Positions 21,376-64,000 of a stretch of 64,000 nucleotides of DNA are shown piece after piece. The stretch's first letter is position 1; each line of letters opens with the position of its first letter. A program made the position numbers and the translations under genes. The notes beneath the pieces are model-generated. The model was not told where the DNA came from. It was given only the letters and a program-made list of their open reading frames with translations, and did not search any database. The stretch is from Octopus sinensis. Taxonomy: Eukaryota. The stretch spans positions 434,001 through 498,000 of the forward strand of contig NC_043024.1 in assembly GCF_006345805.1 (NCBI RefSeq). The letters are read 5' to 3'.

Positions 21376-21590
21376 TTTCCTTCAACTGATGCGGTTAGTT
21401 TATTCCATGCTTCAGTAATTCTGAACGTGAAAAACTGCTTCTGAAAGTCATGGGTGCTGTGTTGGTTTGTTGCTTTTGTAAGTCCAGAAGTATTCGACAC
21501 ATGGAATTCAAAAAGTTGCCCAAGGTTGTTGCTGTTGGAAGGATGGTGGGTTATCTTGTGGATGTCTATCAGGTCCGATGCCAAGCATCG
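21376..21590 (-). mobile_element. CR1-like LINE fragment
   Basis: ...HDFQKQFFTFRITEAWNKLTASV, same family as the 41-42 kb copies. Confidence 0.7.
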
Positions 21591-28276: not shown

Positions 28277-30296
28277 CTGTTGAGGAAAAAAGACAGATAA
28301 GGGACGTTTTTCAGATCATCATCATCATCTGCATTATTAATGTCATCATGTGTATTTGTATATATGCATGTGTGTGTGAACATGTATGCGCATGTGTACA
28401 TACATCTGTGTGTGTGTGTATACACACACACACATACTGTGGTGGGCATGGTTCCACTAATCCGCTAACAGCTAATTAGTGAAGCTAACTTTTTGTTTAG
28501 TAGATTAGCATTTTCTCCAACTTTGGAAACTGTTAGCTGACCAATTGCTTCCATTAAATTTAGTTCCACTAACTTTAAGTCCGCAAACAAAATTCATACA
28601 TTTGTTCCTGTCTGTTGTGGGCGTGTCCCAAAGGGTCTGTCAGGCACACGATTGGCTGACCATGTGGACATGTGACAAAACGTGATTGGCTGACACAGCT
28701 GCAGCATTGTGTAATTCTGCAGTTTTGAGTTGTGTTCTCTTGCGACATCGTCACATAACAGACAGTTTTACAGCATCAGTGACAGCAGTGGACGTTATCG
28801 CTTATCATTACTGAAGGTGAAGACATTTTTGTTTGGCCTCAGGATGAAGGGCTTGTTGAAGAGTCTGCAACAGCTGTGGGTGATGAAGAGGTCATGTGTG
28901 TGTGTGTGTGTATATTATATATATATTATATATATATATATATGTATAAGGGTGAAAAGGAACACACGAGTTGATATATATGAAAAAACAAGTCAAAAAT
29001 AGAAAATGCTAAAATAATTTTATAGTGAACATTTCAGTACCGGTTTCGGTCATTTTGAGACCTTTTCAACTGTAACGATTAAATAATTAAATTTAGAAAA
29101 ATTAGAAGAAAAGTTTTCTTAAAAGAATATTTCTATAGTAGTGTTCAGATTTAAGTGGCATTCTGCCTTTCTCTGACTCCCTTGTTTGCACTTGTGTGTT
29201 CGAGGTAGTTGTGAGTTCTTGGTAGGGTAGTAGAGGGAATATAGAAAAACTCATAGAATTCCAGAAAATTTTAAACGGACTGGACGTAAACATCCAATTC
29301 ACGATGGAATATAGCCAACAACAACTCCCCTTCCTCGATATCCTCATTAAGAAAGCTAATAATATAATAGAAACAGACATATACTATAAGCCTACAGACT
29401 CTAAGCAATATCTTCCATTCAATTCATGCCACCCCAGACACACCAGGATGAATATCCCCTTCAATCTAGCAAAAAGGATATGCACTATAGTCTCTAACGC
29501 AAACACCAGAGACACACGACTACAAGAACTATAAGATACCCTAATCACCAGGAACTATCCACCTTCACTTATTGACAAGTGCATTCAACGTGCCCTTCAA
29601 CTTAACATCAAGGAACTGAGACATCCCAAATCAAAGAAAAACTTACATCTCCACACACAACCCTCTCAATAACGAAGCCTTCGACACTATCCTCCACAAC
29701 ATACCCCTCCTAAAAAAAGACCACAGAATGAACACAATCCTCCAAACACACACGATCATAAAAAGCAAAAGACAGCCTAGATCCATGAAAAGTCTCCTTA
29801 CACAAGCCCGAATTCACTCTTCAACACAGAAGCCGACAGTAAAAAAAATGTGGAAGACCCAATTGCGGGATATGCGACTATCTAATCGAGGGTTCTGAGT
29901 TCTCCTTCAAACAGGGACAACGGTTTACAGTGAAAAGCAACTTCACATGTGCTTCGGAGAACCTAATATACTCACTAACCTGCTCCGGTGTCAAGAGCAG
30001 TACATAGGCCAAACAAAAAATGGTTTGCGTAAACGAATGGCCCTGCACAGATCCCAGATAAAAATTCCCCAAAACAGAAAAATAGCTTTTAGCCAACACA
30101 TAGATACTTGCGCCAACAAAAAAACACCAAACTTCAGAATTTTCCCCCTCTACCAATTTAGGGACGATACAACCTCGAGACAAAGAATAAGTAAAGAAAA
30201 TCTCTTTATTACAAAATACAAGCCACTTCTTAACGGGTCTACGACAAACAATTAATATACCTCAACTTTAGAATAAAAGAAAAAAATATATATACA

Positions 30297-31046
30297 TTCG
30301 CGGGGTTCTCTTCCCCTTCTCTCCCCCTCTTTTTACATTGTCTGTCTGGACTCCTCTCTTCCTACTTCTCTCCATGGCTATGCATACTTAAGCTAGTAAC
30401 CTACCTCATTCTTGATTCCGAATTCCTTTTGCCAAGTCTGTCCGTAAACGAAGTGATCCCAAGATAAGAAATCTTTGAACTTTAATTCACCCCGTATCTC
30501 TATTTATTATTATTTATTATGTATCATTATTCTGAGCCCCCTAGTCGCCACTCTGTTTACTATTTCAGCCTCGCCTCGTTTTTGCATATTCTGTATAATT
30601 CATTAGTTATCGTTATAGATATTTAAGATCTATCTCCCTTACAGGCTGATCGAATTGGCCGCCGATTTCTTCGCGGGGTTCTCTTCCCCTTCTCTCCCCC
30701 TCTTTTTACATTGTCTGTCTGGACTCCTCTCTTCCTACTTCTCTCCATGGCTATGCATACTAAGCTAGTAACCTACCTCATTCTTGATTCCGAATTCCTT
30801 TTGCCAAGTCTGTCCGTAAACGAAGTGATCCCAAGATAAGAATCTTTGAACTTTAATCACCCCGTATCTCTATTTATTATTATTTATTATGTATCATTAT
30901 TCTGAGCCCCCTAGTCGCCACTCTGTTTACTATTTCAGCCTCGCCTCGTTTTTGCATATTCTGTATAATTCATTAGTTATCGTTATAGATATTTAAGATC
31001 TATCTCCCTTACAGGGCTGATCGAATTGGCCGCCGATTCTTCGCGG
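30297..31046 (+). repeat. About 373-bp tandem duplication within the Penelope 3' region
   Basis: Two copies starting ttcgcggggttctcttcccc, differing mainly by single-base indels, followed by an irregular (CCA)n tract at about 31055-31290. Confidence 0.85.
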
Positions 31047-31335
31047 CGCGCCCGCCCTACCCACCCCCTCCACCACCACCACCACCACCACCACCACACC
31101 ACCACCACCACCACCAACCACCACCACCACCACCACCACCACCACCACCACCAACCACCACCACCCACCACCACCACCACCACCACCACCACCACCCCCC
31201 CTCCACCACCCCCCCTCCACCACCACCACCACCACCACCACCACCACCACCACCACCACCACCACCACCCACCACCACCACCACCAATACCGGATATCTC
31301 TATTTTGCTCCAACTATACCGGATGTCGTTTCTCC

Positions 31336-31972
31336 CACCACCATTATAGGTGTCTACTCTTTGAACCCCCCTCTTCAATACGCTATTTCACCATGCATTA
31401 CCCCTCTCTCGATATCCTACGTTCTACTTGCCTAGAACCTGTCCTCTGAACCACCTCTCCCACTGGTGCTCCCCTATATTTCTGCCCCCCCACCACCACC
31501 ATTATAGGTGTCTACTCTTTGAACCCCCCTCTTCAATACGCTATTTCACCATGCATTACCCCTCTTTCGATATCCTACGTTCTACTTGCCTAGAACCTGT
31601 CCTCTGAACCACCCCTCCCACTGGTGCTCCCCTATATTTCTGCACCCCCCCCCCCCACCATTATAGGTGTCTACTCTTTGAACCCCCCTCTTCAATACGC
31701 TATTTCACCATGCATTACCCCTCTCTCGATATCCTACGTTCTACTTGCCTAGAACCTGTCCTCAGAACCACCCCTCCCACTGGTGCTCCGCTATATTTCT
31801 GCACCCCCCCCCACCACCATTATAGGTGTCTACTCTTTGAACCCCCCTCTTCAATACGCTATTTCACCATGCATTACCCCTCTCTCGATTTCCTACGTTC
31901 TACTTGCCTAGAACCTGTCCTCTGAACCACCCCTCCCACTGGTGCTCCCCTATATTTCTGCACCCCCCCCCA
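31336..31972 (+). repeat. Four-copy tandem array, 158-159-bp unit
   Basis: attataggtgtctactctttgaacccccc... recurs at 31343, 31501, 31660 and 31819. Confidence 0.9.
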
Positions 31973-32863
31973 TAAAAAGCACCATCCGAACGTGGCCGAT
32001 GCCAGACCCCTCTGGCACCTGTGCAGGTGGCACGTAAAAAACACCCACTACACTCGCGGAGTGGTTGGCGTTAGGAAGGGCATCCAGCTGTAGAAACACT
32101 GCCAGACTAGACTGGAGCCTGGGGCAGTCCCGAGCTCCCCAGACCCCGGTCGAAACCGTCCAACCCGTGCTAGCGCGGAAAACGGACGTTAAACGATGAT
32201 GATGATGATGATGATGACACAGAAATACTACACTCCATAGAATCCATTACTAATCAGCCCCTTCATAGCTATATTTACACCCATTCATATTCTCCCTTCT
32301 CCGTTTTTTTCTTCTTCTTCTTCTTCATCATCATCGTTATCATCATCATCGGCGTCATCATCATCGCCACCATCATCACCACCATCTTCTCCTTCTCCTC
32401 CTTCTTCTTCTTCATCATCATCGTTATCATCATCATCGTCGTCATAATCATCACCACCATCACCATCATCTTCTCCTTCTCCTTCTCCTTCTTCTTCTTC
32501 TTCTTCTTCTTCTCCACCCCCTACCCCTTAAGTTTGTCACTAATGTTTTTTAGTATAACACCTACGCTAATTCTATAAACAAGCCTGTCAATATAAATAT
32601 TCTCCTGAATTGAACTGAGACTGCCAGCCGCCACTGACCATTCAAAATACGACCATCAGGGCACTCCCAGATTCTCCCACCCCCCTTTCCTCACCAGCCT
32701 TCCCTCTACTACCCTACCAAGAACTCACAACTACCTCCAACACACAAGTGCAAACAAGGGAGTCAGAGAAAGGCAGAATGCCACTTAAATCTGAACACTA
32801 CTATAGAAATATTCTTTTAAGAAAACTTTTCTTCTAATTTTTCTAAATTTAATTATTTAATCG

Positions 32864-32907
32864 TTACAGTTGAAAAGGTCTCAAAATGACCGAAACCGGT
32901 ACTGAAA
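32864..32907 (+). ncRNA. Minimal type I hammerhead ribozyme motif, U3-A8 variant
   Basis: CAG-TTGAAAA-GGTC(TCAAAAT)GACC-GAA-ACCGGT-A-CTG: helix I CAG/CTG, helix II GGTC/GACC, palindromic helix III, GUA cleavage triplet. An identical antisense copy lies at 29032-29075. Confidence 0.7.
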
Positions 32908-33131
32908 TGTTCACTATAAAATTATTTTAGCATTTTCTATTTTTGACTTGTTTTTTCATATATATATATATACGTACATTGTACATACATTTGTGTATAC
33001 GCATGCGTGCGTGTGTCCACATGTCACCAACGCCATTTGGCCAGTGGTGACAATATGTCCTGCAGCACAATATGGAGTACCTTTGATGTTAGGCCACCTG
33101 GGTTGGTATTGAACCTACAACAACAAATTTA

Positions 33132-48479: not shown

Positions 48480-49130
48480 TACATGGATCATAATGTAAGA
48501 ACTCGATTTTGCTGGAGTGGATGGGTCTTCTCAAGAATCACCAAATATCTCGATCCAGTGTCATTTCTTCTGTGATGCTCAATATCTTGAGATCAGTCTC
48601 CACTACTTCATCCCTTCCTCTTCCTAGGTCTCCCTCTTCTGCAAATTCCACCCATTTTAAAAATAATCAGTACTTCTTTATACTTCTTTCTTGAATCTAT
48701 ATATGTGTATCATCATCTTTATCATATAAATGACAATGCCAAGGGCCATACCAGGTCCCATAGTCTGTTAGGGCTTGGCTTCTATGGCAGGAAGCCCTGC
48801 TTAACACAAACGACTCCACAGAGTGTACTGGATGCTTTTTACATAGCACCAGCACCCACTTCTACTTGGCACCCTGATTTTAGGATCTCAGTTCTGTTGT
48901 GGTGGTCGTGTCAAGTACAGCAAAGCACCACATATCTCAGTCCTTTGTCATCTCCTTTGTAAGGTTCAACATTTTGAGATCAGCATTCAATATTTCATCC
49001 CATGTCTTCCTGAGTCTCCCACTTTCACAACTTCCCTACACTTTAAGTGACTGACACTTCTTCATGCAGCTGATCTCATCCATCCGCATCACACGACCAA
49101 ACCAGCTCAGTCTCCTTTCTTGCACTCTGC
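48480..49130 (-). mobile_element. Two RTE-type LINE 3'-end fragments
   Basis: Minus-strand GRPRKR.DEVVETDLKILSITEEMTLDRDIW and LSWFGRVMRMDE...RKTWDEILNADLKMLNLTKEMT. Confidence 0.55.
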
Positions 49131-49504
49131 ATATAATTCTTCTTATGCCCAACTTCTCTCTACATACAGCATCACATTACTCTCACCATATTCAACCTTT
49201 CCTTCTTCTTCTTTTCTTGTCTCTTCTTTTTATTTATTTATTTACAACTCTGATGAAGCTCCATGATTCAAATCAGTTTTATTACCAACTATGATAAATA
49301 TTCTCTTTGTATCATAATGGTAATTCTAAAGAACATCGGCAGCAGAAACAGCTGTAAGATGGAATGCAGTCTTTTTGTAAATTATTAATAAATAATAATG
49401 GATGCAAATGAATTGTTGTTCATCACTGTTATCTCCATTTTCTCTTTTCTTTCTATATAATTTATTCAGTTACTAAATTTCTTTTCTGTTGCAGTATTTC
49501 AACA

Positions 49505-49562
49505 ATGTTGCGAACTGTGATATTTATTTTGGCCGTCGTTTGCCTAAGTTCTGTTAATGCTG
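49505..49562 (+). CDS. GH18 chitinase-family gene, coding exon 1 (signal peptide)
   Basis: ttctgttgcag acceptor at 49494; ATG 49505 encodes MLRTVIFILAVVCLSSVNA, a hydrophobic signal peptide with V-N-A cleavage pattern; G|GTAAGT donor, phase 1 matches exon 2. Confidence 0.85.
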
Positions 49563-49990
49563 GTAAGTTTATGACTAATCTGTTTATCAACCTTATCCTT
49601 CCTGTTTTCCATATCTACATTATCTTTTAATCCACCTCATCAATTTCTGATTATTTCCAGTTACTTTTGTTTTCCTTTAACCTCCAAGCAGCTCTGATTG
49701 AACAGATGTAAGATTGACCTGCTAGAAATAGCTGTCAAATCTCCATCAATAACACCCTGCTGTCTTAAAAGAGAGGACACAGTGGAAAAAAAAGTAATCC
49801 TAGGTAGAGAAAAGCATAGATTAGATCAATATACATAACCAGTCTGACCACTGAGTTATAGTGGTCATTCAACCATGCCAGTAGCTCAGGTATTATACTG
49901 TCTGCCATTTCATACTAACTGACCACTGAGCCATCCTGACTTGTCAGTACTCCCTGCCTAACTGTTTCCAGTTCATTCCATATATGCTAC

Positions 49991-50023
<33 letters not shown>

Positions 50024-50789
50024 ATCGTCATCATCATTTAATATCTGTTGTCCATGCTGGCATGGTTTGACCTGGGCTGGTAAGCTGAGGGGCTATACCA
50101 GTCTGATTTGGCATGGTTTCTACAGCTGGATGCCCTTCCTACTGCCAACCACTCCGAGAGTGTAATGGGGGCTTTTACATGTCACTGGCACAGGTGCCAG
50201 TTGCGTGACACCAGTATCTGCCACAACTATGATTCCACTCGACTTGTTGGGTCTTCTTCTCAAGCACAGCATATTGCCAAAGGTCTCAGTCACTTGTCAT
50301 TGCCTCTGTGGGGCCCAACGCTCAAAAGGTGCTTTTTAACATGACACCAGTAAAACTGCTAGTTTTGTGACACCAGCATTGGCCATATTGCCTCCGTGAT
50401 GCCCAACGCTCAAAAGGTGCTTTACGCAAATTAATTATATAAAATACATTTATAAAATAAAATGAACACAGAATTTTGCTTCTCACAATATACAAACATT
50501 TTTCATGGCACCAGCAGACAAAATGGAAAAGGCGATGCCCTGGAGGATAGTAAGGGAGATGCACTGGAACAGCCACCCTGACTGATGGGGCTTGCACTTG
50601 AGGACAGCAGTCTCCACCCTGATAGCAACAATATGGTTCAAGGGACCAAGAATACTGAAGTTCCCAACTGTTTGACCGTGAACCTATCAGAGAGCGACCA
50701 ATACCTTGAGAATTTACTCCCCCTCTTCCTCCCTCCGTATTGTTTATTGACCCGTTTACCACCTGTTCTACCTTTTGGTTTCATTTCAG

Positions 50790-51069
50790 ACACAGCATCG
50801 TCCGAGAAAATTGTCTGTTATTATGCAACCGGTCTTTCAAATTACTCTACCCCTTTGCCACCCGGTCTCGACCCTACCTTATGTACTCATTTGATCTTAA
50901 TTGGATCCAGTATAATTGATGGACAGATCAAACCCCAAAAACCAACTGATCCACAGGTGTACTATGAGAAAATTCCTTTAATGAAAAAACTTAACCCACA
51001 GCTGAAAGTTTTATTATGCAATGGAGGAAATTTCAATGGGGTTCTTGCCACAAGTCAGAATCGATCCAG
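50790..51069 (+). CDS. GH18 chitinase coding exon 2
   Basis: (D)TASSEKIVCYYATG...LDPTLCTHLILIG...MKKLNPQLKVLLCNGG...NRS(R), showing the GH18 KxVCY, LCTH and KVLLxxGG motifs. Confidence 0.92.
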
Positions 51070-52229
51070 GTACAGTGCATCTTAGAGTATATGGATTAAT
51101 CAATTATATTATAAAAGAGAAGCTGATCTCCGTCTGTCCATCACAAAACATATGTGGGGGAGAGGAAGAGAAAAAGTTGTTGCTGTTGAGAGAGAAATAC
51201 AGTGAGATAGAGAGAGAGAATGTGTGTGTGTGCAAAAGATAGATAGATAGGTGGTGTTGTCACCATAGTAACTAAGAAGTTTTTATTAAAAATACAGGAA
51301 CTTTTAGTGCAAGTTTGTCAACACAACACATCACAGACTTCAAAACAAAAAAACAAAAGAGTTTCAATATATTACCATATTTTTTGGTTGTTTGTGTGTA
51401 TGTGTACTCTTTTACTCTTACTTGTTTCAGCCATGCATCTGTGGTCATGCTGGAGCACCACCATGTTTACTCTTGTACGTTCTAAGTTCAAATTCCCTCT
51501 AGGCTGTCTTTGCCTTTCATCCTTTCAGGTGTCAGTAAAATAGGTACCAGTTGAGCACCAGGGATGACTGATATTAGCTTAACTAAGCCTGAGTAAGTGT
51601 ATTAAAAACTGCACCCCTCTGCCAAGCCATGTTGAGCCAGTGTAGCAGAATAGACTCATCAAACCAGTGTGACCTGAGGGTCAAATTCATAGCCTCCATG
51701 TCAGACCATATATATGTTTGTATATATGTATGTATGTGTGATATGTGTATGCATGGTGTGCATGTGTGTGTGTGTGTATTATTGTTTGCTGAACTTAGTT
51801 CTGCATGATAGTTATAAACGAGGGGGACTGTCGTACAAGCAGTGATTTTTGTTCCTGTTTTGAGTCTTCCCTGAAGACATGTCTGATCATGAGAAATATT
51901 AGCTTAAATGGTAAAAGATCAGGCTTGGCAACAGGAAATACATCCTACCTCAACAAACTGCATCTGATCCATTGAGCATGGAAAACTGCACATTAAAAAT
52001 GATGAAGCAGTGATGCTGGTGGTGGTAGTGGTTATGGTGGTGGTGGTGGTGGTGGTGGTGGTGGTGGTGGTGGCAGTGATGATGATGGTTGTGGTCAGCC
52101 AGGAGCTATAATAAAAGACACTTGTCCAAGGTACTGTGCAGAACTGAACCTTGAGCCATGTGGTTGCAAAGCAAGCCTCTTCACCATATAACCATTTTTT
52201 AAAATAATTTTCAATTCTTCTTATTCCAG

Positions 52230-52356
52230 ATTTGCCAACAGTTCTTTGCCCATTCTCAGGAAATATGGTTTTGATGGGTTGGATCTTGATTTCGAATTCC
52301 CTGCTTGGAATGGTTTACCCAAGTATCAGAAACATTCCTTCAGTCTTTTATTGATG
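52230..52356 (+). CDS. GH18 chitinase coding exon 3 (catalytic DxxDxDxE)
   Basis: FANSSLPILRKYGFDGLDLDFEFPAWNGLPKYQKHSFSLLLM; the FDGLDLDFE motif is intact; ttccag acceptor, ATG|GTAATT donor. Confidence 0.95.
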
Positions 52357-55300
52357 GTAATTAACTTTGCTTCAAAACTTTACAAGTATTTAATCTGTTA
52401 TATTCGGTTTTTGATATCCATATTTTGTCAGCAATAACATCAGGAGTAATAGTGCCCCAGCTGGCCATTTGCTGATTGCCGGCATATTTGGTATTGTCAA
52501 GAAAGTGTCTATATATAAAAGATGCGTGCAGTATGTAAAGGACACATATAGATATATAAAGGTTATATACAAATATATAAAGGACACACACACACATACA
52601 GTTATAAAGGACAGCTACAGATGTAAAAGTCATATATGGATATATAGCATGTACACATAGAGGACAAATACAGACATATAGGCCATTTATAGATTTGAAC
52701 AACATAGGACATATATTGGTCATATACATAAAAGACATGCATCATCTCCATAACAGCAAGGTTCATTTCATCTGTCTTCCATGAGAAATATGTCTGGACA
52801 TGGAAAAATGTTATTTTGCTTGGAAACAGGTGAAGGTTGGTGACAGGAAGGGCATCCAGTCTAAAAATATGCCTAAACAAATCCCAGCTGACCCATGCAA
52901 GCATTGAAAAGTGGACATTAGATGATGATGATGATGGTGCAAGGTATCAGTGTTGATGTCTCAGGTAAATATATACTACTAGGCTCAAGGCTTTAATAGA
53001 AGACACTTGACCACAGTGCCATGCAGTGGGACTGAACCTCATCATCATCATATATATATCTTCTCTTTCTCTCTCTCTATCTCTCTCTTTCCCCTCCCAC
53101 TCCCATGTGACCCATTCTCCTCTCTCTGTCCTCTTCCTTTCTTCGCTTGGCCATTCATTCATTCAGTCTCCCTTCTCACAGGTTCTGCTTCCAACAGTCA
53201 GTTCGTTTCTTCACCTTTCATTCTCTCTTTCCGTCTCCACTTTCCGGTCCCAGTCCTTTCGGACATTTTCCTTGCATGACTCAGACACGTCTTGTCCTAT
53301 TCTCGAACTGTCCAACCTTTATTTTTATTTGTGTATTATCTTTTATATTTTACTTGTTGCGGCCATACTGGGGCATCGCCTTGAATGAATCAACCCCAGC
53401 ACTTTTTTTAAGCCTTGTACTCGTTCTATCAGTATCTTTTACTGAACTGTTAAGTTACAGGGATGTAAACACACCAACACCGGTTGTCAATCAGTGGTGA
53501 GAGAACAAACACAGACACAAAAACATGTACACACACACACACACATATATATAATCAAGTTTCCAAAATTTTCCAAATTTTGGTTGATGGGGATATATAA
53601 TCCAAGCCGGTACCAATATGAACTTCTACCAATTGATAATGCTGGTTAGCGTACAGGAGTTTATGTACTTTCAGTTGGTTGTTTACCTATTCTGTGTACT
53701 TTGTGATGCTGGACAATGCAGTTGTCTCTAAGGAGTCTGTTGGCTTTTTGGTAGACGAGAAATACTGAATCAGTTTCAGGAAAACAGAGATTTGAGAATA
53801 TCCAATTTTTTAAATTTATTTATGCAGTCTTTAAATTTCTTCGGAAAAATTGGATACTCTCTATCCTCTGTTTACCTTAAACTGATCTTTCAGCTACCAA
53901 ACTCTTTTACTACAAAAGTAACCTCAAAAAAAGGTTGAGGTGGGGTTTGCACAATTTTGAGGTTTCTTAACAAAGGGAGGCAACTCTGCCTGAACAAGCT
54001 TTACGTCTTAGAGAAGAAAATGTTTAAAATACAGAGTTTTACCAGGGAATGAAACTTCAAAGATACACCATGAACTTTATTATTATTATTATTATTTAAT
54101 AGATAATCTTTTAATGTAAAGAGTGTTTGTCTGTGTTTTGATTACAGCAGACCCATAGCATAGTTCTGTTTTGTTTTTCTTCCTGAAATACTGTAAATCT
54201 ATGTCTTTCTTTTGATAAAAGAGTGTTTTAAGAGAGATTTGGCTGCTATTTGTAGTATCTCAAGTTAGCACAGAGACATCTGTGTGTGTGTCTTTTCTCA
54301 GAATATTTTGCACAATAATTTTTGGACATCTTCCTGCTAACCATTCAACTTCAAATTACAATTGTTAATTGCTGGAAGTCAAGTGGACTGAGATGTACAT
54401 ATAGTGTTAATGTATAGAGTTGGCAGTTCAATATGAAATTAGCCCTGAGGCTAATCAAGAAACACATTGTACTAAATGTACAGTCCATAATATACTTCGG
54501 ATCTATGCAAGGGGCAGGTTCTGAGGAAGGTGAATGATAAATAAATAGCAACAGATGCATATGTCAATTCACTACAACTGTTTCCAACTAATTTTTAATT
54601 AATTGGTTAATGAAGACATTACATCATTAGAAAAAACTGTTTTCATTGTGTGAATACATGAACCACAACATTCAAAACCATTCGGAATTCAATGGGGTGG
54701 GCAGCTTCATGATTTTTGTGACTCTTGCTGGTCAAGATGAACAACCTGTTAGAGTTTGAATGTTGTGGTTCATGTATTGACACAATGAAAACAGTTTTTT
54801 CTAATGATGTAATGTCTCCATTAATTAATAATTTAAAAATTAGTTGGAAACAGCTGTAGTGAAATGACACATTATCCATCTGTTGTTATTTATTCATTTA
54901 TATATATATATATCATCATCATCATTGTTTAAAGTCTGCCTTCCATGCTACCATGGGTCGGACAGGTATATCACCTAATTGTTAAGGTGTTGCACTCACA
55001 ATCTAGCAATTGTGGGTTCAATTCCTGGGCTGGGCAATGTTTTGTGTTCTTGTGTAAAACACTTCATTCCACATTGCTCCAGTCCACTCAGCTGTAAATG
55101 AGTAACACTGCAAAGACCTCACTTTCCAGTTTGGGGGAATATTGGCCTGCTTGCCTAGCCTATAAGGTGGCATCATTCAAAAGCTAAAACAATGCAAATT
55201 GCATTGTGACTAGCGATGTATAACAACATTCGTTAGCCAGATCGATCATATGATATATATATATATATACATTTACCTTTGTTACTACTCTGGCTTTCAT

Positions 55301-55391
55301 ACACACATACTCACACATACATAAAAAATATAGAGGTATGTATATGTGTGGGAGATGTATATCAAAGTTTGTCTTTCACTTCATCTTACAG

Positions 55392-55516
55392 GAACTCTAT
55401 GCATTGTTTCAACAAGAAGCTGCCCTTACCAACAGACCACGCTTGATGCTGACTGCAGCTGTCGTTTCCACAAAGGAGATAACTGATGCCTCTTATGAAG
55501 TCCCTATTCTTGCTAA
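55392..55516 (+). CDS. GH18 chitinase coding exon 4
   Basis: ELYALFQQEAALTNRPRLMLTAAVVSTKEITDASYEVPILA(K), with the typical RLxLTAAV...YE motif; AA|GTAAGT donor. Confidence 0.93.
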
Positions 55517-55559
55517 GTAAGTAATTCCATATTTGTTCATCTCCTTTATGTGTATGTCC

Positions 55560-55835
55560 TATAAATGTTCTGACCATGTTGTTTATATCTGTAAATGGCC
55601 TTTATGTCTGTATGTGTCCTTTATGTGTATGTGCTATATATCTGTATATGTCTTTTACATCTGTATCTGTCCTGTGTAGCTGCATGTCTTCTTTATGTCT
55701 GCATGTGTCCTTTATAGTTGTATGCATCCTTTATATTTGTAAGTGTCCTTTATAGTTGTATGTGTCCTTTATATGTGTATGTGTCCTTTATATTTGTATG
55801 TGTCCTTTATAGTTGTATGTGTCCTTTATATATGT
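55560..55835 (+). repeat. About 19-bp minisatellite (tgtgtcctttatagttgta), with an inverted diverged homologue at about 52500-52750
   Basis: Visible 19-bp periodicity; about 95 bp align at roughly 85% identity to the reverse complement of the 52.6-kb segment. Confidence 0.75.
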
Positions 55836-57012
55836 ATGTAATCCCAGCATCCAACTGATAAAATGTCAAGACTGTGTTGGCACCATGAAGAATGCTTCGG
55901 TGCCATAGAAATGGATGTATTTTTTCCCCTTTCATCGTTCTGTATGTTTTTGTCTAAGAAGAAAGCTATCATAGAATCTCTGAGACTCTTAGGGGGCAAA
56001 GGGACAGAGAGAAGAGAAAATTATCCTCAGACTGGGGACCAAGATCAAGAAGCTTGCAACAGAGTGAAGTCTCTTCTGAAAACATCCAAGGTCCAAGGAG
56101 TTGTGTTAAAACCAGGCAATAATTTAACCCTTTAGTATTGAAACCAGCCATATCTAGCTCAAATATGCCTCCTGTTTTACATTTAAACTGGACAAATCAG
56201 ACCTCTCACACCTACCCTACAATGTCATTCTAAAGATAAACATTCACATCATTGAAATCTCAAAGCTACAAAATAATGCAGGATTAATTAAAAACAGTGT
56301 GAATAAACGAGCAGAACATTTGCCAGAGTAATGTGAATGCTAAAGGGGGGTTGAAACAATGTTGATAACCATTTAACTGTTTTAAGCATTTAGAATGTGG
56401 CCATGCTGGGGCACCATCTTCAAATACTTTTAATCAAATGAATCGACCCCAGTGCTTTTTTTTAAAGCCTGGTACTTATTTTATCAGTCACGTTTTGCCA
56501 CACTGCTTAGTTATGAGGACATAAACAAGCTAACACCAGTTGTCAAGTGGTGGTGAAAGACAAACACAGATAGAAAGAGACACAGACATACACATACAGA
56601 TATGACGGGCTTCTTTCAGTTTCCATCTGCAAAATCCACTCACAAGGCTTTGATCAGCCTGAGGCTATAGTAGAAGACACTTGCCCAAGGTGCCAAGCAG
56701 TGGGACTGAGCCTAGAACCATGTGATTTTAATGCTATTTTTAATGGCATTTAAATATTTGTATTTAATATTTTAATGACATTTCAAAGATAGTTGCATGT
56801 TTGTATTTTTAATGCATTTTAATGGCCTTTAAATATTTGTATTGAATGATATTTTAAGGCCATTTGCATATTGCATTTAATGATATTTTAAAGGCATTTG
56901 AGTATTTGTATTTAATGACATTCACTTTGTTTTCACCTCACCTCCCTGGCCTTTCCTTGCTCTCTTAACATTCTCTTAACATTTCCCTCTCATCTAACTT
57001 ACCTCTGAACAG

Positions 57013-57139
57013 AGTACTGGACTTCATCAACCTGATGTGTTACGACTACCATGCTTTTGCTTACTACGATCCCTTCACAGGATTTAACAGTCCACTCTAC
57101 CCTGAAAAGCATGATTCCATCTATGGCAACCGGTCCATT
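57013..57139 (+). CDS. GH18 chitinase coding exon 5
   Basis: VLDFINLMCYDYHAFAYYDPFTGFNSPLYPEKHDSIYGNRSI, with LDFINLMxYD and TGxNSPLY motifs; 127 nt, phase 2->0. Confidence 0.93.
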
Positions 57140-58193
57140 GTAAGTCTCAATTACCCTTCATTAGTCTTTTTTTCTATTTATAATTCTCTATTTAATTAGT
57201 TATATCATTCAATGAATAACCTTTTTATTTCACACGGTGGTCTTACAGGAATCTGTAAATACTGCAATAGAGTCAGAGGGGAAAAGAGATTTAAGCTCAG
57301 AGGAAGATAACCATTTCTAAACATGTCCATCGTTTATCTTTGGTGAAGAAATTTTTTTTTTCTCAAAGAGTGAAAAAGAGACAGAAGAACATACACCTTA
57401 TTGCATATAATTCTTTTATCATTATTATTATTATTATTATTATCATCATAGTAGCCATTTATGATATCATTTCATCCTTATTTGGAATCCTTTTATTTTA
57501 GTTACTTCTAGAATGCAGAAATATAAGAATAACTGAGTCATCATCATCATCATCATCGTTTAACGTCTGCTTTCCATGCTGGCATGGGTTGGACAGTTTG
57601 ACTGAGGACTGGCAAGCCAGAAGGCTGCACCAGGCTCCAATCTGATCTGAGAAGTTCTACAGCTGGATGCCCTTCCAAATGCCAACTTCGCTGAGAGTGT
57701 AGTGGGTGATTTTTACATGCCACCAACATGGGAGCCAGTCAGGCAGTCCAACAAACACACTCTGCCAACAAACAACATGAATCTACCAACTGCTACAAAC
57801 TTCAAAAGAAGACAGATGGATGGGATGGCCTTGAAGTCAAAGATTTTAAAACTAATGGCGACAACACTTGAATATCACCTGAGGAAACACAACTGGATCT
57901 CATTATGCAAACAAACAGTTGTGTAACCAAATACCTGTGTTTTTTGAGAACCATGTTGTATGGAAACAATTGTAGTGATTAAAAAATAACTGTCCAACCG
58001 TACTCCTTCTTGGTGACTCCAATTTCTTCAGTTTTATAATCACACACAATGAATATCCAAACATATATGTGGAAGTATATAATAATGCTACCGGATAGCA
58101 TTGGTGGACGATTCTGATGGTGGGCGAGCTTTATACTGTACTCTGCCAAGTTCCCTAATAGAATATACAATAACTAACTATAAAAATATATAT

Positions 58194-58613
58194 ATAATTT
58201 TCACATCAACACACACACACGTTTATGAGGGGAGGGGCTGCAAAGTTCCTGGCTTTCGATAAAAGAAAATAGAGGAGGATCAGTTAATTATGATTTTATT
58301 CAATATATTCCCCTCTCAGATTCACACATTTATTGCAGGAGTCCTTCAGTTTTTCTTAGTCATGTAAAAGAACTCAGAAGGTTGGGCCTCCAGCTAGGCC
58401 TTTCATGATAAAGACGTTTACAAACTCATAAGTGAATGTGAGAATTACTCAGAAGCAATTCAAACTCTGGGGAGACTCTACGTGAAACCTTTTAAACTTT
58501 GATATTTGAGTTTGGGTTTATAACACCCTTAAAGCCAGGAACTTTTCAGCAGCCCCTTGTACAAGCAAGAAAATTGCTGTTACCTTTATACTAAGGCTCT
58601 CTTCATCTTCATA
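58194..58613 (-). repeat. 420-bp inverted duplicate of 61067-61486
   Basis: Base-by-base reverse-complement comparison gives 419/420 identity; includes codons [10 protein letters not shown] and the exon 7 donor. Confidence 0.95.
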
Positions 58614-58672
58614 TTTTAATGTTCCATTTATATATATATATCTATATATATACATACACATACACACACACA

Positions 58673-58743
<71 letters not shown>

Positions 58744-59011
58744 ATGTGTATGTATATATATAGATATATATATAAATGGAACATTAAAATTAATCAAAGA
58801 TATATTAAGTATGTCTATTTGCTAGAAATAAGAGTTTTGACTGTTATTTCCAGCAGGTAGACATACTCAGTATGTCCTTTGATTAATTTAAATCTTTCAG
58901 CTACTTAATGCTTGGGGGGGGGGTTGCATTTAAATTATTACACTAGATAATAATAGAATCAATGATATCTTCATTGATTCTATTATTATTTCTCATGAAT
59001 TATTTGTTCCG

Positions 59012-59094
<83 letters not shown>

Positions 59095-59347
59095 ATATTA
59101 TGTGTGTGTGTGTGTCTTTTTGTTTGTGTTTGTCCTCCACCTCTGCTTGACAACTAGTGTGGGTGTGTGTATGTCCCAATAACTTAGCGGTTTGACAAAA
59201 AGACTGATAGAATAAATACCAGGCTTTAAAAGAATAAGTACTGGGGTCAATTTATTGAACTAAAAATTCTTCAAGGCGATGCTCCAGCATGGCCACAGTC
59301 TTCTGTCTGAAACAACTAAAAGTTAAGAGTTATATATCTGTTTTCAG

Positions 59348-59515
59348 GTTTTCTCCGCTAACTACTGGATTCTGAAGGGGATGCCAAAGTCTAAAGTTGT
59401 GGTTGGAATTCCTTTGTATGGCCACAGCTACAAGCTGGTGTTTAAGGGTTCGCATGGGGTCCATGCTCTCAGTTATGGACGAGGTGAAAATGGCGGCTTT
59501 GTCACTTATCCACAA
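59348..59515 (+). CDS. GH18 chitinase coding exon 6
   Basis: VFSANYWILKGMPKSKVVVGIPLYGHSYKLVFKGSHGVHALSYGRGENGGFVTYPQ, with the GxPxxKxVxGIPxYG motif; 168 nt. Confidence 0.93.
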
Positions 59516-59599
59516 GTAAGGGTTGCCTTCTTGCTTTTTCTGAACATTCTCTCTCTCTCTCTCTCTCTCTCTCTGACAATAGATTAGCATTGAGATCAT

Positions 59600-59880
59600 C
59601 ACTCACCAACATTATCATCACCAGTCACATCATCATCAATCACCATCATCATCAGTTACCATCATTGTCAGTCACCATAATCATCAGTCACCATCATCAT
59701 CAGTTACCATTATCAGTCACGATCATCATCATCAGTCACCATCATCATCAGTCACCATCATCATCAGTCACCATCAGCATCAGTCACCATCAGCATCAGT
59801 CACCATCATCATCATCAGTCACCATCATCATCAGTCACCATTATCAACAGTCACCATCATCATCATCATTACCATTACTA
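59600..59880 (+). repeat. (CAT)/(CAGTCACCAT) low-complexity tract
   Basis: Degenerate repeats just downstream of chitinase exon 6. Confidence 0.8.
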
Positions 59881-60976
59881 CTACCATTCCCACCATTTTC
59901 TTTGTTAGGATTCCTCACTTGACAATTTCTGCTCTTTGTTTAAGGACTTGATAAAGTTCAATGACCTAGTGGTTAGGGTGTTGCACTCACAACCTTACAG
60001 CTATGGTTTCAGTTCCTAGGTCAGGTGGTGTGTTGTGTTCTTGAACAAAACCCTTCGTTTCACATTGCTCCAGTCCACTCGGCTGTAAAACAAGTTCCAG
60101 TATTAACTGAGAAGTTAACCCTGTGAATGGCTGGAATCCCATCCAGGGGAGGATTATGATCTCAATCACTTATATTCTATGGAAACCAGGTTCGACTCCA
60201 GCCTTATGAGCCCTAGAGCTCATGACTGAGCTAAACTAAGATTAAGGACTTTAAGAGGAGCATTGTTGTCACTGGCACCACCGCTATCATCACCATTATC
60301 ATCACCATCACCACCACCACCATCACCATCATCATCATTGCAATCATCACCTCATTTTCATCATCACTGCCATCATTATCATCACTATTACCTATTTCTT
60401 TACTACCCACAAGGGGCTAAACACAGAGAGGACAAACGGATTAAGTCGATTACATCAACCCCAGTGCGTAACTAGTACTTAATTTATCGACCCCAAAAGG
60501 ATGAAAGGCAAAGTCGACCTCGACGGAATTTGAACTCAGAACGTAGCGGCTGACGAATACCGCTAAGCATTTCGCCCAGCTCACCGCCTATCATCACTAT
60601 TACCATTACGTTCTGAGTTCAAATTCTGCCCGGGTTGACTTTGCTTTTCATCCTTTCAGGGTTGATAAATTAGGTACAAGTCAAGTACTAGGATGATGGT
60701 GGTGGTGGTGGTGGTTGCTACTGTTGCTGTTGTTGTTGTTGTTTAGCCCAGGTAAGCTTTGACTGTGCAGAGAGCTATGATCAAAGATGTTCTAGCCTTG
60801 ACCATCCTTATCTTTTGTTAAGGCATAGTGTATCTTGGACTATATTACCTAATATTATCCTACTTGTTGTTGTTCTCAGATGATAGAGTTGGAATATCTT
60901 TGATCCTATGTGACCTGGGGTTAAAACAACACCCATCTCTGAATTTCTCTCCCCTCCACCTCTTTCTACTCCACAG

Positions 60977-61096
60977 GTGTGCAAATATCTCCAATCAAAC
61001 TTCACCAGGGTGTTCTATGAACAGTGTCAGGTCCCTTACATGTACAAGGATCATCTATGGATTAGTTATGAAGATGAAGAGAGCCTTAGTATAAAG
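60977..61096 (+). CDS. GH18 chitinase coding exon 7
   Basis: [40 protein letters not shown], with the VPY...WISYED motif; 120 nt; AAG|GTAACA donor. Confidence 0.93.
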
Positions 61097-61120
61097 GTAA
61101 CAGCAATTTTCTTGCTTATA

Positions 61121-61454
61121 CAAGGGGCTGCTGAAAAGTTCCTGGCTTTAAGGGTGTTATAAACCCAAACTCAAATATCAAAGTTTAAAAGGTTTCACGT
61201 AGAGTCTCCCCAGAGTTTGAATTGCTTCTGAGTAATTCTCACATTCACTTATGAGTTTGTAAACGTCTTTATCATGAAAGGCCTAGCTGGAGGCCCAACC
61301 TTCTGAGTTCTTTTACATGACTAAGAAAAACTGAAGGACTCCTGCAATAAATGTGTGAATCTGAGAGGGGAATATATTGAATAAAATCATAATTAACTGA
61401 TCCTCCTCTATTTTCTTTTATCGAAAGCCAGGAACTTTGCAGCCCCTCCCCTCA
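61121..61454. mobile_element. Tc1/mariner-type MITE in chitinase intron 7
   Basis: TA|caaggggctgctgaaaagttcctggcttt ... aaagccaggaactttgcagcccctcccctca|TA; duplicated in inverted form within 58194-58613. Confidence 0.6.
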
Positions 61455-61489
61455 TAAACGTGTGTGTGTGTTGATGTGAAAATTATTTG

Positions 61490-62170
61490 TGCTGGTCAGT
61501 ATCTGCCAGGTTTCCACATAAATGGCTCAGATCTCATCGAGCATCCAATCAAATACCCCATGTACACTTTTTCTTTCACTTTAATTTAAATTCTTCTTGA
61601 GAGAGTCCAAGCCAGTCGCTAATAAAGTGACAAGACATTTTGAGTTGAAGGAGTCCCCTGTGTCTGTAAATATGGAGTGGAGTTGGTAAGTTAGTTGAAC
61701 TGTCAATGCATACACTTGAGTGAGTGCATCTATTCAAATAAGAATCTCCGGTGAAGAATCTTTGGAATGTCTTACAGATCTTCATTGTGCCACTAATAGA
61801 TTGGATTTGGAGAATAGCTATCAGTTTCTGTTGCTCTTTCAATGAGACACTTAGAATTTCTAGATTTTTGAGTAAATCTGTAGGTACATTGCCTAATGCA
61901 CCTGTGTTGAGAAGTACAAATGAAAATTTCTAGTCAATGTGCAGGAGCTAAAAGTTCCTTCTTCCTGGACTTTCGATCAGACATTCACATCCATTGGGCA
62001 ACTGACCTCTACAACGGTGAGTTCCCTGTCCCACACAACAATATCAGATTTGTTATGTTTGCACTGAGTTTCTGTTTTTAAAGGTATGAATACATGCTGG
62101 TCCTGACATGCCTTTGGTGTCAGAGCAAACCTTCCTGTAGATAGTCTTTGCAACTGTATCATGGCTCAGA
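61490..62170 (-). mobile_element. Decayed R4/Dong-like RLE retrotransposon 3' fragment
   Basis: ORF ...KHNKSDIVVWDRELTVVEVSCPMDVNV (RLE PD-x-E motif) and ...QIQSISGTMKICKTFQRF; same type as 2450-3260. Confidence 0.65.
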
Positions 62171-62722
62171 GGCAAGTAGTATCTTGTAGATGTTTTGGGT
62201 CAGCTGCTGATGATGTGGATGATGTCTCCCACACATATATAGCGATATGTGCATGTATGTATGAATGAATGTATTCAGTTATATTTCTAGATTCCTCGTC
62301 AATAGAGAAAGAGCCAGTGTCAAACCTAAGACCCGAATCTCCTTCATTGAAAATTTAAATAACATCAACAGAGTATTTTTGCATTTGCGTGTGTATGTGT
62401 GCAATACTTTGACTCTGTGCTTGTGTAGAGTTATAGGTTTCATTTTATGTCTCTATTGTCTTGCTTATAGTTACATGTTTAGGCATGGACATATGTACTT
62501 AAATGCTAAACCTTTGGAAATGTTTACAAGAATTTGACAGTTCCATTAATGGCTTGTGTCTGTAATCTTATTAGCTTTCTCCCTTCTGGGAGATAATGTA
62601 TAGCTTAAATATACAATGCAACACTTCTTCCAGGGGATTTGAACCTAAGATGAACCCCAGACTGGTCGTTCAATACTCAACATCTTTTCCATTCAGCCAT
62701 CACATTTCCTTTTCTCTTCCAG

Positions 62723-62857
62723 GTGAACTGGATCAAGAGCCATGGTTATCCGGGTATTATGGTGTACTCAATGAACTATGATGATTACTTGGGTGTTTGT
62801 GATGGGGGCAAGACAAAGAACCCACTCCTGAAGATTATTAACAAGTTCCGGCTGTAA
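62723..62857 (+). CDS. GH18 chitinase coding exon 8 (terminal)
   Basis: VNWIKSHGYPGIMVYSMNYDDYLGVCDGGKTKNPLLKIINKFRL*. The eight exons sum to 1140 nt = 379 aa plus stop. No CBM14 tail. Confidence 0.92.
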   Translation: MNWIKSHGYPGIMVYSMNYDDYLGVCDGGKTKNPLLKIINKFRL

Positions 62858-64000
62858 GGCTCACATCCCACGTCCCTGCCTGCCCACTTTCGTTTCCTAA
62901 CCTCCCTCGCCCCCACCTGTTTTTATTATTCACATGGACCCTAATATTTTAAATGCTTGCAATAATCCTTCATTGTGCCTCTTTCCTCACCTCTCAATCT
63001 CTCAACTTTCTAGCCCTTAAGTTTACAAAGTCCAACCACACCCCTACTCTTTTCATCCTAACATTCGGTTTTACCCCCCACCAATCTTGATTGCGGATCT
63101 GCCCCTGGAGCCTAAAAAACATAGCCTTGCAGGATTTCATTATGTGTCTTTCAGTTGTAAGTTCAAATCCTACCCAATCCTTCTTTGTCTTTCATCCTTC
63201 TGGGGTGGGGGTCACTAAAATCAATAGCAACACAGTGGAACTCGGCCTGAAACCACATAGTTCAAAAGTAAACTTCAAAAGCCAGGGTATTCGAAGTTGT
63301 TATTTCCTAAGAAGTGAAGGATATGTTGTTTGAGTCTCATTAATACATCTCTCTCAAATATGGCACAGCTGTGTCGTAAGAGGTTTGCTTTGCAGCTACA
63401 TGGCTCTAAGTTCACTCCCACTGCATGGCATCTTCAACAGGTATCTTCAGCTATAGCCCTGGGCCATCCAGGGCCTTCTGAGTGGATGTAGTGAACAGAA
63501 GCCTTTTGTGTGTGTATCAATCAATGAGAGAGATGGAAGATGAAATGAGAATCTGTATAAATCCTTACAATCGTTTTGACCCATCTAGCACCAATCCCTT
63601 GCAGTGCGATTTATTAATTACTATGTATATATAATGTATGTATGTATGTATGTATGTGTTGTTGTCCAGTCCAGATCAGCACTTATCACACAAGTAAAGT
63701 GGTTGGCATAAGGAAAGGTGTCCAGCTGTGACAACCATGCTAAAACAGACAATGGAGCTTGGTGCAGTCCTCTGGCTTGTAAGCATGGAAGATGGACTTA
63801 AATGACGGTGATGAACACTGGGGTTGACGTAATTGACTTACTCTTGCCTCCAAAATTTCTTGCTTTGTGCCAAAATTTGAAACTAGTATTTTCCATAAGT
63901 TATTTTATATAAACATCATCATCCGCATCTTTTAAAAAGATGGCATGGATTGGAGAGTTTGACAGGTGCTGACCAAGCAGGAGCCTACACCAAGCTTCTG

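Follow-up and report, generated by a model that had tools for sequence, protein, structure and literature searches.

A near-perfect 420-nt inverted copy of an exon/intron boundary within a chitinase gene of Octopus sinensis: a recent templated insertion or an assembly error

Intron 5 of a chitinase gene of Octopus sinensis carries an almost perfect reverse-complement copy of the end of exon 7 and of its splice donor, which raises the questions of how such a sequence came to be there and of whether it could act on the transcript of the same gene. The sequence analysed, hereafter the window, is the whole stretch of 64,000 nucleotides, identical to the corresponding part of the O. sinensis PacBio+Hi-C assembly (GCA_006345805.1, CM016886.1), and all positions refer to it unless a different locus is named. 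The gene was located by tblastn with the O. bimaculoides ortholog, followed by spliced mapping of the RefSeq protein XP_029652780.1 (P0123), which matched exactly the eight coding exons listed in Table 1 and was assigned to GH18 (Pfam PF00704, E=2.8e-63). According to this mapping, intron 5 extends from 57140 to 59347 and the exon 7 donor (AAG/gtaaca) lies at 61097-61102, the normal donor being the one used in the RefSeq model. No family was matched by an Rfam scan of 49000-64000, so the repeat is not explained by a known RNA gene.

The coordinates and identity given for this repeat in a preliminary description of the DNA were supported by a repeat search and a base-by-base comparison: the two 420-nt arms lie 2453 nt apart in opposite orientations, they are identical in 419 of 420 positions after reverse complementation, and their complementarity ends abruptly on both sides. 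They form the longest inverted repeat within the window, and a repeat of this length cannot be attributed to chance. The earlier assignment of the arms to exons and introns also agrees with the exact eight-exon mapping. The right arm consists of the last 30 nt of exon 7 (61067-61096, 10 codons), the donor GTAACA and 384 nt more of intron 7, with intron 7 making up 390 of its 420 nt. The A·C mismatch that had been proposed at A61118 was found as the sole difference between the arms, with C58562 opposite, and in a four-way alignment an A occupied this site in the right arm and at the orthologous site of both O. vulgaris and O. bimaculoides, a G in the same sense being present in the left copy only.

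Table 1. Positions in the window of the chitinase gene, the inverted repeat and the parts of the insertion.
Feature	Position	Strand	Remarks
GH18 chitinase gene, O. sinensis XP_029652780.1	49505..62857	+	8 coding exons
Chitinase exons 1-4	49505-49562, 50790-51069, 52230-52356, 55392-55516	+	spliced protein mapping
Chitinase exons 5-8	57013-57139, 59348-59515, 60977-61096, 62723-62857	+	spliced protein mapping
Left arm, derived reverse-complement copy of 61067-61486	58194..58613	+	intron 5; 419/420
Right arm, ancestral source	61067..61486	+	exon 7 end, donor, intron 7 start
Sole arm mismatch	58562	+	C opposite A61118 (intron 7 position +22); copy holds derived state
Whole O. sinensis-specific insertion, about 494 bp	58197..58690		sits in (TA)n run
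P1, second derived block	58613..58701	+	reverse-complement copy of adjacent P2
P2, ancestral (TA)n(TG)n microsatellite and flank, P1 template	58702..58790	+	colinear with O. vulgaris L004 from 18524
Junction J1, 3-nt ATA microhomology	58194..58196		common to TA-repeat flank and start of copied block
Junction J2, 1-nt overlap (A)	58613		overlapping alignment ends
Junction J3, fold-back centre	58701/58702		within self-complementary (TA)n
TIR-bounded element, MITE-like (putative)	61124..61447		within right arm; copy at 58233-58556
Predicted loop, 2276 nt, closed by duplex and P1:P2 hairpin	58791..61066	+	gene model and fold

The polarity of the duplication was apparent from the comparison with related species. 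The O. vulgaris locus (L004) was obtained via the 421-aa chitinase isoform P0122 (the other isoform, P0121, has 379 aa) and belongs to an independent assembly based on ONT and 10X Chromium linked reads with Omni-C scaffolding. The right arm is ancestral, as it is colinear in O. vulgaris (L004 20862-21281) and also in O. bimaculoides, in the latter with a 114-bp internal indel. The sequence of the left arm, on the other hand, matched exon 7/intron 7 only, and never intron 5, in O. vulgaris, O. bimaculoides and Argonauta, and the insertion as a whole was confined to O. sinensis in this comparison. In O. vulgaris the empty site could be read directly, with the left flank passing into P2 via an unbroken (TA)n and without any loss of flanking sequence: window positions 57705-58196 align to L004 18050-18541 and positions 58691-64000 to L004 18524-23792, with no overlap of the two alignments outside the TA repeat, and the O. 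vulgaris match of P1 is in minus orientation only (L004 18627-18524, 98%). Absence from three relatives, together with a single difference in 420 nt between the arms, bears out the very young age that had been claimed for the duplication; the split between O. vulgaris and O. sinensis is dated to about 2.5 Mya.

The insertion is composite, and corresponds to the reverse complement of 58702-58790 joined to 61067-61486, that is, of two local downstream blocks. Directly after the left arm, P1 and P2 constitute a 178-bp palindrome with arms of 89 nt and no spacer, and this palindrome is part of one event together with the left arm. An ancestral C is kept in P1 and lost from P2, and 2 substitutions are found 9-11 nt from J1, close to the breakpoint, as occurs near error-prone replicative breakpoints. 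A 58-aa ORF crossing J1 had no candidate in a collection of 5.8 billion proteins, which apparently does not cover the non-coding ORFs of octopus contigs. The palindrome, the composite build (the 420-bp block joined to 89 bp copied in inverse orientation from next to the insertion site) and the (TA)n site were absent from the preliminary description; the composite insert and its location within the (TA)n provide clues to its mode of origin.

The insert is either a very recent DNA-repair accident or else an assembly error. The first reading is preferred, and a probability of about 0.6 is assigned to a real, young and lineage-specific insertion produced by snap-back or template-switch synthesis at a fragile TA repeat. 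The locus presents the features of a templated inverted insertion, namely a nearby reverse-complement source, an empty ancestral site, and junction microhomology along with a structure-forming repeat, and repeats that form secondary structures are known to promote snap-back templated repair (PMC5728401, PMC2943611). From the observed structure and polarity of the insert, its absence from the relatives and the overlaps at its junctions, we infer the following repair route. Repair of a break or a stalled fork in the hairpin-prone (TA)n microsatellite of intron 5 would have proceeded by snap-back or template-switching synthesis, as in MMBIR/FoSTeS or SD-MMEJ, with the nascent strand folding back within the TA repeat and copying 89 nt of the DNA just synthesised. 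A subsequent 2.3-kb jump on the same template would have allowed the copying of 420 nt over the exon 7/intron 7 boundary, after which a 3-nt overlap would have brought the strand back to its first template. This would leave an inverted templated insertion of ~494 bp in intact flanking sequence.

Several traits of the insert are shared with the products of MMBIR/FoSTeS and of SD-MMEJ/polymerase-theta repair, including local templates on the same chromosome, inverted orientation, two blocks, overlaps of 1-3 nt, a hairpin-forming insertion site, preserved flanks and point changes by the breakpoint (PMC5728401, PMC2943611). In contrast to SD-MMEJ/Pol-theta insertions, which measure tens of bases, the octopus insert reaches about 494 bp and involves a 2.3-kb jump, and its sequence does not identify the repair pathway. 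Two considerations count against the preferred reading: snap-back templated insertions usually measure tens of bases, in contrast to the ~500 bp of this case, and a perfect AT-rich palindrome of 178 bp is expected to be unstable in vivo. Separately, RNA-mediated copying was considered because of the A-to-G difference (in the sense of the source), and was rejected, as the join 58790/61067 does not fall at splice sites and one transition is insufficient as evidence.

The most serious competitor, clearly less probable than a real insertion and still carrying appreciable weight, is an artefact of the library or the assembly, the possibility of mis-assembly having been raised already in the preliminary description. 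The contig would in this case have been built on a chimeric molecule or read that outlived polishing, the true site being empty as in O. vulgaris. Such a molecule could have been made by fold-back or strand-switch synthesis while DNA was being repaired or end-repaired for the library, or the error could come from a chimeric long read. The insertion is known from one CLR-based PacBio assembly of one individual, and its centre lies inside (TA)n, where both polymerases and aligners err. It also resembles, in its inverted copy, intervening deletion and palindromic centre, a known class of long-read artefacts, the inverted chimeras with intervening deletion and the palindromes that appear after polymerase-based steps (PMC6218980). 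It departs from such fold-back chimeras in that amplification, absent from standard PacBio libraries, is not expected here, and in being non-contiguous and free of adapter and gap. A palindrome left by a missed adapter must be contiguous, whereas the arms match here over 89 nt and 2276 nt are then skipped, which excludes this simple form of the artefact. No SMRTbell adapter remnant was found in the window, nor any N gap in the sequence around the insertion, and the joins to the true flanks are seamless at both junctions and show microhomology. At typical coverage, moreover, correction and consensus normally purge insertions that come from a single read.

The small differences between copies and templates can be read in two ways. 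A simple chimera of reads from one haplotype would not be expected to produce them, and the copies do differ, the left arm by its derived base and P1 by the ancestral C. On the other hand, the heterozygosity of the octopus is about 1.2%, so these one or two differences could derive from the other haplotype, and as such would fit a chimeric molecule that carries its alleles. The divergence from O. vulgaris shows in addition a step ~250 bp upstream of J1, which may mark a haplotype switch or a join between reads or assembly pieces. Against the artefact, the high-divergence block is balanced between both lineages, and therefore does not correspond to a one-sided error.

If the insertion is real, as is preferred here, the copy, once transcribed, is expected to base-pair with the last codons of exon 7 and with its splice donor. 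Both arms lie within the annotated transcript, and folding predictions gave -783 kcal/mol for the arm-arm duplex compared with -117 and -109 for the single arms. The 420-bp duplex that had been proposed for the pre-mRNA was recovered in the minimum-energy fold of the 3.4-kb region 58150-61530, in the form of 419 in-register arm-arm pairs. For the donor region (61094-61102), the partition function of a 1.5-kb mini-construct, used in place of the full 3.4 kb that was folded by minimum energy, gave a mean unpaired probability of 0.0008 with the insertion versus 0.35 without it. The predicted loop would start in the last part of intron 5 and run through exon 6 and intron 6 into exon 7, of whose 120 nt it would include 90. 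The looped exons are flanked by reverse-complementary sequence in introns 5 and 7, which is the geometry of circular RNA formation and exon skipping; a transcript joining exon 5 to exon 8 would lose 96 aa in frame.

A pre-mRNA that retained intron 5 until intron 7 was transcribed could form this duplex and the adjoining P1:P2 hairpin, burying the exon 7 donor and the final 10 codons of the exon. The effects to be expected would be promiscuous hyper-editing by ADAR in the two arms, most of whose length is intronic, a low level of A-to-G change at up to 13 exonic adenosines (61068-61095), and a lowered use of the exon 7 donor in the fraction of transcripts in duplex form; all of these effects would be limited if intron 5 were spliced out during transcription. 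These RNA-level consequences are predicted from structures at equilibrium, from which ADAR recoding, splice blocking and the production of circular RNA or siRNAs may be conjectured, and the insertion is most likely neutral or mildly harmful.

The arrangement has parallels in known systems. As in inverted Alu pairs and the like, which are hyper-edited and favour exon skipping or back-splicing, near-identical inverted copies flank exons, here exons 6-7, within one transcript, and A-to-I editing in metazoans takes place mainly on dsRNA of young, nearby inverted repeats (PMC9989829). Unlike them, the arms copy an exon/intron boundary of the gene itself instead of transposons, so the donor that would be required for back-splicing lies inside one of the arms. 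There is also a likeness to hpRNA loci (PMC10317233) and to young plant MIRNA genes, which are born when their target gene is duplicated in inverted orientation: part of a gene, duplicated in this way, yields a long hairpin perfectly complementary to its parent, with the differences that the octopus hairpin lies inside the parent gene, has 30 exonic nt and is without known small RNAs.

The preliminary description had gone further and proposed the left arm as a possible newborn element for recoding. In this interpretation, which appears very improbable, the left arm would be a functional editing-site complementary sequence (ECS), its duplex having been retained to direct recoding at the end of exon 7 or the splicing of exons 6/7. 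The geometry is appropriate, since the left arm lies in an intron, complements an exon of the pre-mRNA to which it belongs and is predicted to form dsRNA, and 11 of the 13 adenosines in the 30 exonic nt would give a non-synonymous change if edited. The octopus also belongs to the heavily recoding cephalopods (PMC9989829).

Nevertheless, a perfect duplex of 420 bp is a substrate for promiscuous, non-selective hyper-editing and not for site-selective recoding, and the claim of a recoding element is not supported. Nor could the A·C mismatch, proposed as a favoured site, recode anything, as this only mismatch lies 22 nt into intron 7, and intron accounts for most of what the left arm pairs with (390/420 nt). 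The ECS duplexes known from other genes, such as those of GRIA2 Q/R and R/G and of Drosophila syt1 and para, are short, spanning tens of bp, as well as imperfect and conserved, and are usually formed with an adjacent intron. The left arm resembles them in being an intronic complement of an exon end and its donor within the same pre-mRNA, so that editing would have to precede splicing, and differs from them in its length of 420 bp, its perfect match, its position two introns upstream and its lack of conservation, being missing in O. vulgaris, O. bimaculoides and Argonauta. Regarding the site of expression, cephalopod recoding is densest in nervous tissue, and octopod chitinases have been reported mainly in salivary and digestive glands. 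Finally, a 1/420 difference leaves too little time for a trace of selection. A literature search combining editing complementary sequences and inverted duplication found no paper in the library searched, and the origin of an ECS by inverted duplication is perhaps, on weak grounds, previously undescribed. A further proposal, also unlikely, is that the locus records the real and datable birth of an exon-complementary sequence in O. sinensis and not in O. vulgaris, in which case carriers, and not O. vulgaris, would show measurable editing at some of the 13 adenosines in the final 10 codons of exon 7, altered splicing of exons 6/7, circular RNA or siRNAs.

An even smaller chance is given to an old inverted duplication that was homogenised by gene conversion and later lost in O. 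vulgaris via slippage of the flanking TA repeats. Mutual conversion is possible between inverted repeats, and the (TA)n on each side of the insert would permit its precise excision. However, O. bimaculoides and Argonauta also lack the insert, so at least two losses would be needed, and the arms of the palindrome are nearly identical as well.

The copied block includes an element of ~325 nt bounded by terminal inverted repeats of ~20-26 nt (GCTGAAAAGTTCCTGGCTTT / AAAGCCAGGAACTTTGCAGC), which was already present at the orthologous O. bimaculoides site. The label of MITE that it had received stands as far as the terminal inverted repeats are concerned, and not as regards dispersal, since no further copies beyond the two arms and the orthologous site were found in the 64 kb of the window or across about 90 kb from related loci. 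The view that the duplication was no transposition was correct, given that the copied block and the element have different ends, and an origin by MITE movement was rejected on this ground and for the lack of extra copies. The least probable reading of all, in which the fragment would have reached intron 5 through capture or movement by a transposon (Pack-MULE- or Helitron-style transduplication, or MITE transposition), can appeal to the element within the block and to TA as a frequent target site, and is already largely refuted, as the block extends past the element by 57 nt and 39 nt on its two sides and is joined to an inverted copy of the adjacent 89 nt, all bases of the insert are local, its ends show unique gene sequence and TA repeat instead of terminal repeats or a target-site duplication, and the element was found nowhere else in about 150 kb.

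Should the insertion be an artefact, it would serve as a warning that CLR assemblies may contain near-perfect short inverted duplications, next to TA repeats, that look like regulatory RNA structures. If it is real, it would represent an unusually clean case of a recent inverted templated insertion in an animal germline, in which both templates, the three junctions and the empty site can all be read, and in which an event at a TA microsatellite made a perfect palindrome and a long inverted repeat within a gene. The palindrome is a likely fragile site, and recombination between the 420-bp inverted arms could invert exon 6 together with most of exon 7. In an animal with very active ADARs, a new duplex complementary to an exon and its donor could lead to hyper-editing, recoding, a blocked donor, circular RNA or siRNAs, and the contrast between O. 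sinensis, which carries the insertion, and O. vulgaris, which does not, would offer a before/after comparison for the appearance of new editing substrates.

The repeat search of the window returned two arms of 420 nt each with 2453 nt between them, and a whole-window self-comparison ranked this pair as the longest inverted repeat of the window. When compared base by base, the arms were identical at 419 of 420 positions, the sole difference being C58562 opposite A61118 (position +22 of intron 7), and the complementarity stopped sharply at either end. The preliminary description had given this repeat with the same coordinates, identity and A/C opposition, together with the same exon/intron anatomy, and both were confirmed, the latter by exact protein mapping.

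Coordinates of the repeat arms and of the surrounding chitinase gene features
Feature	Position	Content	Basis
Left arm	58194-58613	within intron 5	gene model
Right arm	61067-61486	last 10 codons of exon 7, donor and 390 nt of intron 7	gene model
Intron 5	57140-59347		exact protein mapping
Exon 6	59348-59515		exact protein mapping
Exon 7	60977-61096		exact protein mapping
Exon 7 donor	61097-61102	AAG/gtaaca	exact protein mapping

The translated exons matched GH18 chitinases, the best match being that of O. bimaculoides (91%), and the O. vulgaris and O. sinensis proteins fell within the same 90% cluster. The O. sinensis protein XP_029652780.1 (Pfam PF00704) mapped exactly onto eight coding exons, and its locus (GCA_006345805.1, CM016886.1) was identical to the window across 20,496 nt; the window therefore represents the O. 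sinensis PacBio+Hi-C assembly, as GCA_006345805.1 is described through the citation of Li et al. (2020) in the O. vulgaris genome paper. In the O. sinensis annotation, an 837-aa TMTC/TPR-type gene on the + strand covers the entire chitinase locus (1-25353 of the locus record L003, window 43505 onward), so that the chitinase would sit within an intron of this gene. The upstream neighbour in the O. vulgaris and O. bimaculoides listings is instead an aldehyde dehydrogenase, and the latter listing also has a MIOS gene downstream. A 16-nt unit (ATCATCATCAGTCACC, ~15.6 copies) is tandemly repeated in intron 6, which also has ATC-rich repeats (59614-59865 and 60286-60384); O. bimaculoides and Argonauta have similar arrays at their loci.

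The orthologous loci of O. bimaculoides, Argonauta hians and O. vulgaris were compared, the last from an independent assembly (ONT plus 10X Chromium linked reads, Omni-C scaffolding). In the O. vulgaris locus (L004), window 57705-58196 aligned with 18050-18541 and window 58691-64000 with 18524-23792, the two alignments overlapping in a (TA)n run only. Read directly, the O. vulgaris sequence runs from '...AATAACTAAC' through an unbroken (TA)n to 'CATATATGTGTG...AAATGGAACATTAAAAT'. The left arm matched O. vulgaris solely where exon 7 meets intron 7, in minus orientation (99.3%), and in O. bimaculoides and Argonauta the arm sequence was likewise found at that site only. By these comparisons the right arm is ancestral and ~494 bp (58197-58690) are peculiar to O. 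sinensis, as an insert of two reverse-complement blocks: the 420-bp arm and an 89-nt segment, P1 (58613-58701), which copies P2 (58702-58790), immediately right of the insertion site. Window 58613-58714 correspondingly matched L004 18627-18524 in minus orientation. P1 directly adjoins P2 to give a spacerless 178-bp palindrome, and the whole insert is obtained by joining 58702-58790 to 61067-61486 and taking the reverse complement.

At the left outer junction (J1), 'ATA' (58194-58196) is common to the TA flank and the copied block; at the arm/P1 join (J2) one A (58613) is shared, and the fold-back centre (J3) falls within self-complementary (TA)n. The derived state of the arm difference is in the left copy, A being present in the right arm, O. 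vulgaris and O. bimaculoides. A C retained by P1, as in O. vulgaris, has been lost from P2. Close to J1, at a distance of 9-11 nt, there are two substitutions.

Two further features flank the insert. Some 450 bp of intron 5 to its left (57744-58193) are common to O. vulgaris and lack a counterpart in O. bimaculoides intron 5, where short repeated units are found instead. Directly right of the palindrome lies a small hairpin element (58777-58899) with ~28-nt terminal inverted repeats (TIRs; TTAATCAAAG...CTTTGATTAA), 79% self-complementary overall, and this element occurs in O. vulgaris too.

Judging from the sequence, the insertion is probably real (roughly 0.6-0.65). An assembly or library artefact is distinctly less probable, but it has points in its favour: the insertion is known from a single assembly based on PacBio CLR reads, and the known classes of artefact include inverted chimeras that lack an intervening stretch (PMC6218980). 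Against it, the window has no gaps and no adapter remnant, both outer junctions are seamless, and the fold-back is not contiguous, since 2276 nt are skipped. The copies also differ from their own templates, although heterozygosity of ~1.2% could account for these few differences. An ORF across J1 had no match in a protein collection from which noncoding ORFs of octopus contigs are apparently absent. At ~57,940, ~250 bp before J1, substitution divergence from O. vulgaris changes about five-fold, being 2-6% upstream and ~0.5% downstream (49000-57935 vs. 57936-64000). Polarised with O. bimaculoides, the differences were balanced between the two lineages in both blocks, so the step is not one-sided error; it might mark a switch between haplotypes, in line with an artefact, or an old boundary of recombination.

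For a real insertion, we infer that a single chain of events would account for every feature of the insert. A nascent strand would have entered the TA repeat and, by folding back, used 89 nt of itself as template; it would then have moved 2.3 kb along the same template, copied 420 nt there, and rejoined the original template through a 3-nt overlap. The pattern is the same as in template-switching or snap-back templated repair, which occurs at sequences forming secondary structure (PMC5728401, PMC2943611), although the insert is far longer than usual end-joining insertions; the event would belong to an already known kind, the templated inverted insertion making an intragenic inverted repeat. 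Transposition, already discounted in the preliminary description, was rejected because the copied block extends past the TIR-bounded element (61124-61447) at both ends and is fused to local non-element sequence, and because this element predates the O. bimaculoides split and had no further copy in the ~150 kb searched; for these last two reasons the element, first described as a MITE, only resembles one. A 114-bp stretch within it (61156-61269; copy 58411-58524) is found in O. sinensis and O. vulgaris and missing from O. bimaculoides, and represents an insertion or deletion inside an element that is itself old.

The arms diverge by 1/420 (0.24%), compared to 0.6% between O. sinensis and O. vulgaris in the block around the insertion and 2.3% across the whole 15 kb, these species having split ~2.5 Mya (O. 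vulgaris genome paper). With the 15-kb average as rate, the estimated age was 0.26 My (95% range 0.007-1.45 My); rescaled by hand to the 0.6% local rate it was ~1 My, with an upper bound older than the split. Both figures are compatible with an origin after the split, and the proposed youth of the repeat was upheld by this low divergence and its absence from relatives.

A second near-perfect inverted repeat was detected in the window (28974-29239 and 32700-32965; 266 nt, 99.6% identity, arms 3.46 kb apart), with tandem repeats between its arms at 30297-31046 (unit ~373 nt) and 31335-31972 (unit ~158 nt) and an ORF (29947-30255) with a weak GIY-YIG match below the cut-off (E=0.001). Possibly this is what remains of a Penelope-like retroelement that has inverted terminal repeats.

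ADARs edit long perfect dsRNA promiscuously and prefer A·C mismatches; a stem covering a 5' splice site inhibits U1 binding, complementary introns on either side favour exon skipping or back-splicing, and long hairpins may enter Dicer. RNA folding agreed with the pre-mRNA duplex predicted earlier, giving -783 kcal/mol for the arm-arm duplex vs. -117 and -109 for the arms alone, 419 in-register pairs in the minimum-energy fold of 58150-61530, and an adjoining P1:P2 hairpin of -112 kcal/mol. The donor (61094-61102), which is used normally in the RefSeq model, had a mean unpaired probability of only 0.0008 in a 1.5-kb mini-construct containing the insert, as opposed to 0.35 when the insert was left out. 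Joint skipping of exons 6 and 7 (288 nt) would be in frame but would cost core barrel sequence of the chitinase. Gene models with skipped exons already exist for this gene in a relative: in the isoform X2 annotated for the O. bimaculoides ortholog, exon 3 is followed straight by exon 6, and exons 4 and 5 are omitted.

The main targets of metazoan editing are dsRNAs from young, nearby inverted repeats (PMC9989829), and the exonic 30 nt contain 13 adenosines, 11 of them non-synonymous when edited. Selective recoding by ADAR through the duplex is nevertheless unlikely, given that 390 of the 420 paired nt and the A·C site are intronic, that the left arm in intron 5 must persist while Pol II covers another 1.7-2.1 kb, and that reports of octopod chitinases come mainly from the digestive and salivary glands. 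Within the searchable literature set, no paper was found linking the origin of an editing-site complementary sequence to inverted duplication. If the TMTC/TPR-type host gene is real, the inverted repeat would be transcribed in its intron too. The insertion, if confirmed by reads, would constitute a dated natural experiment.
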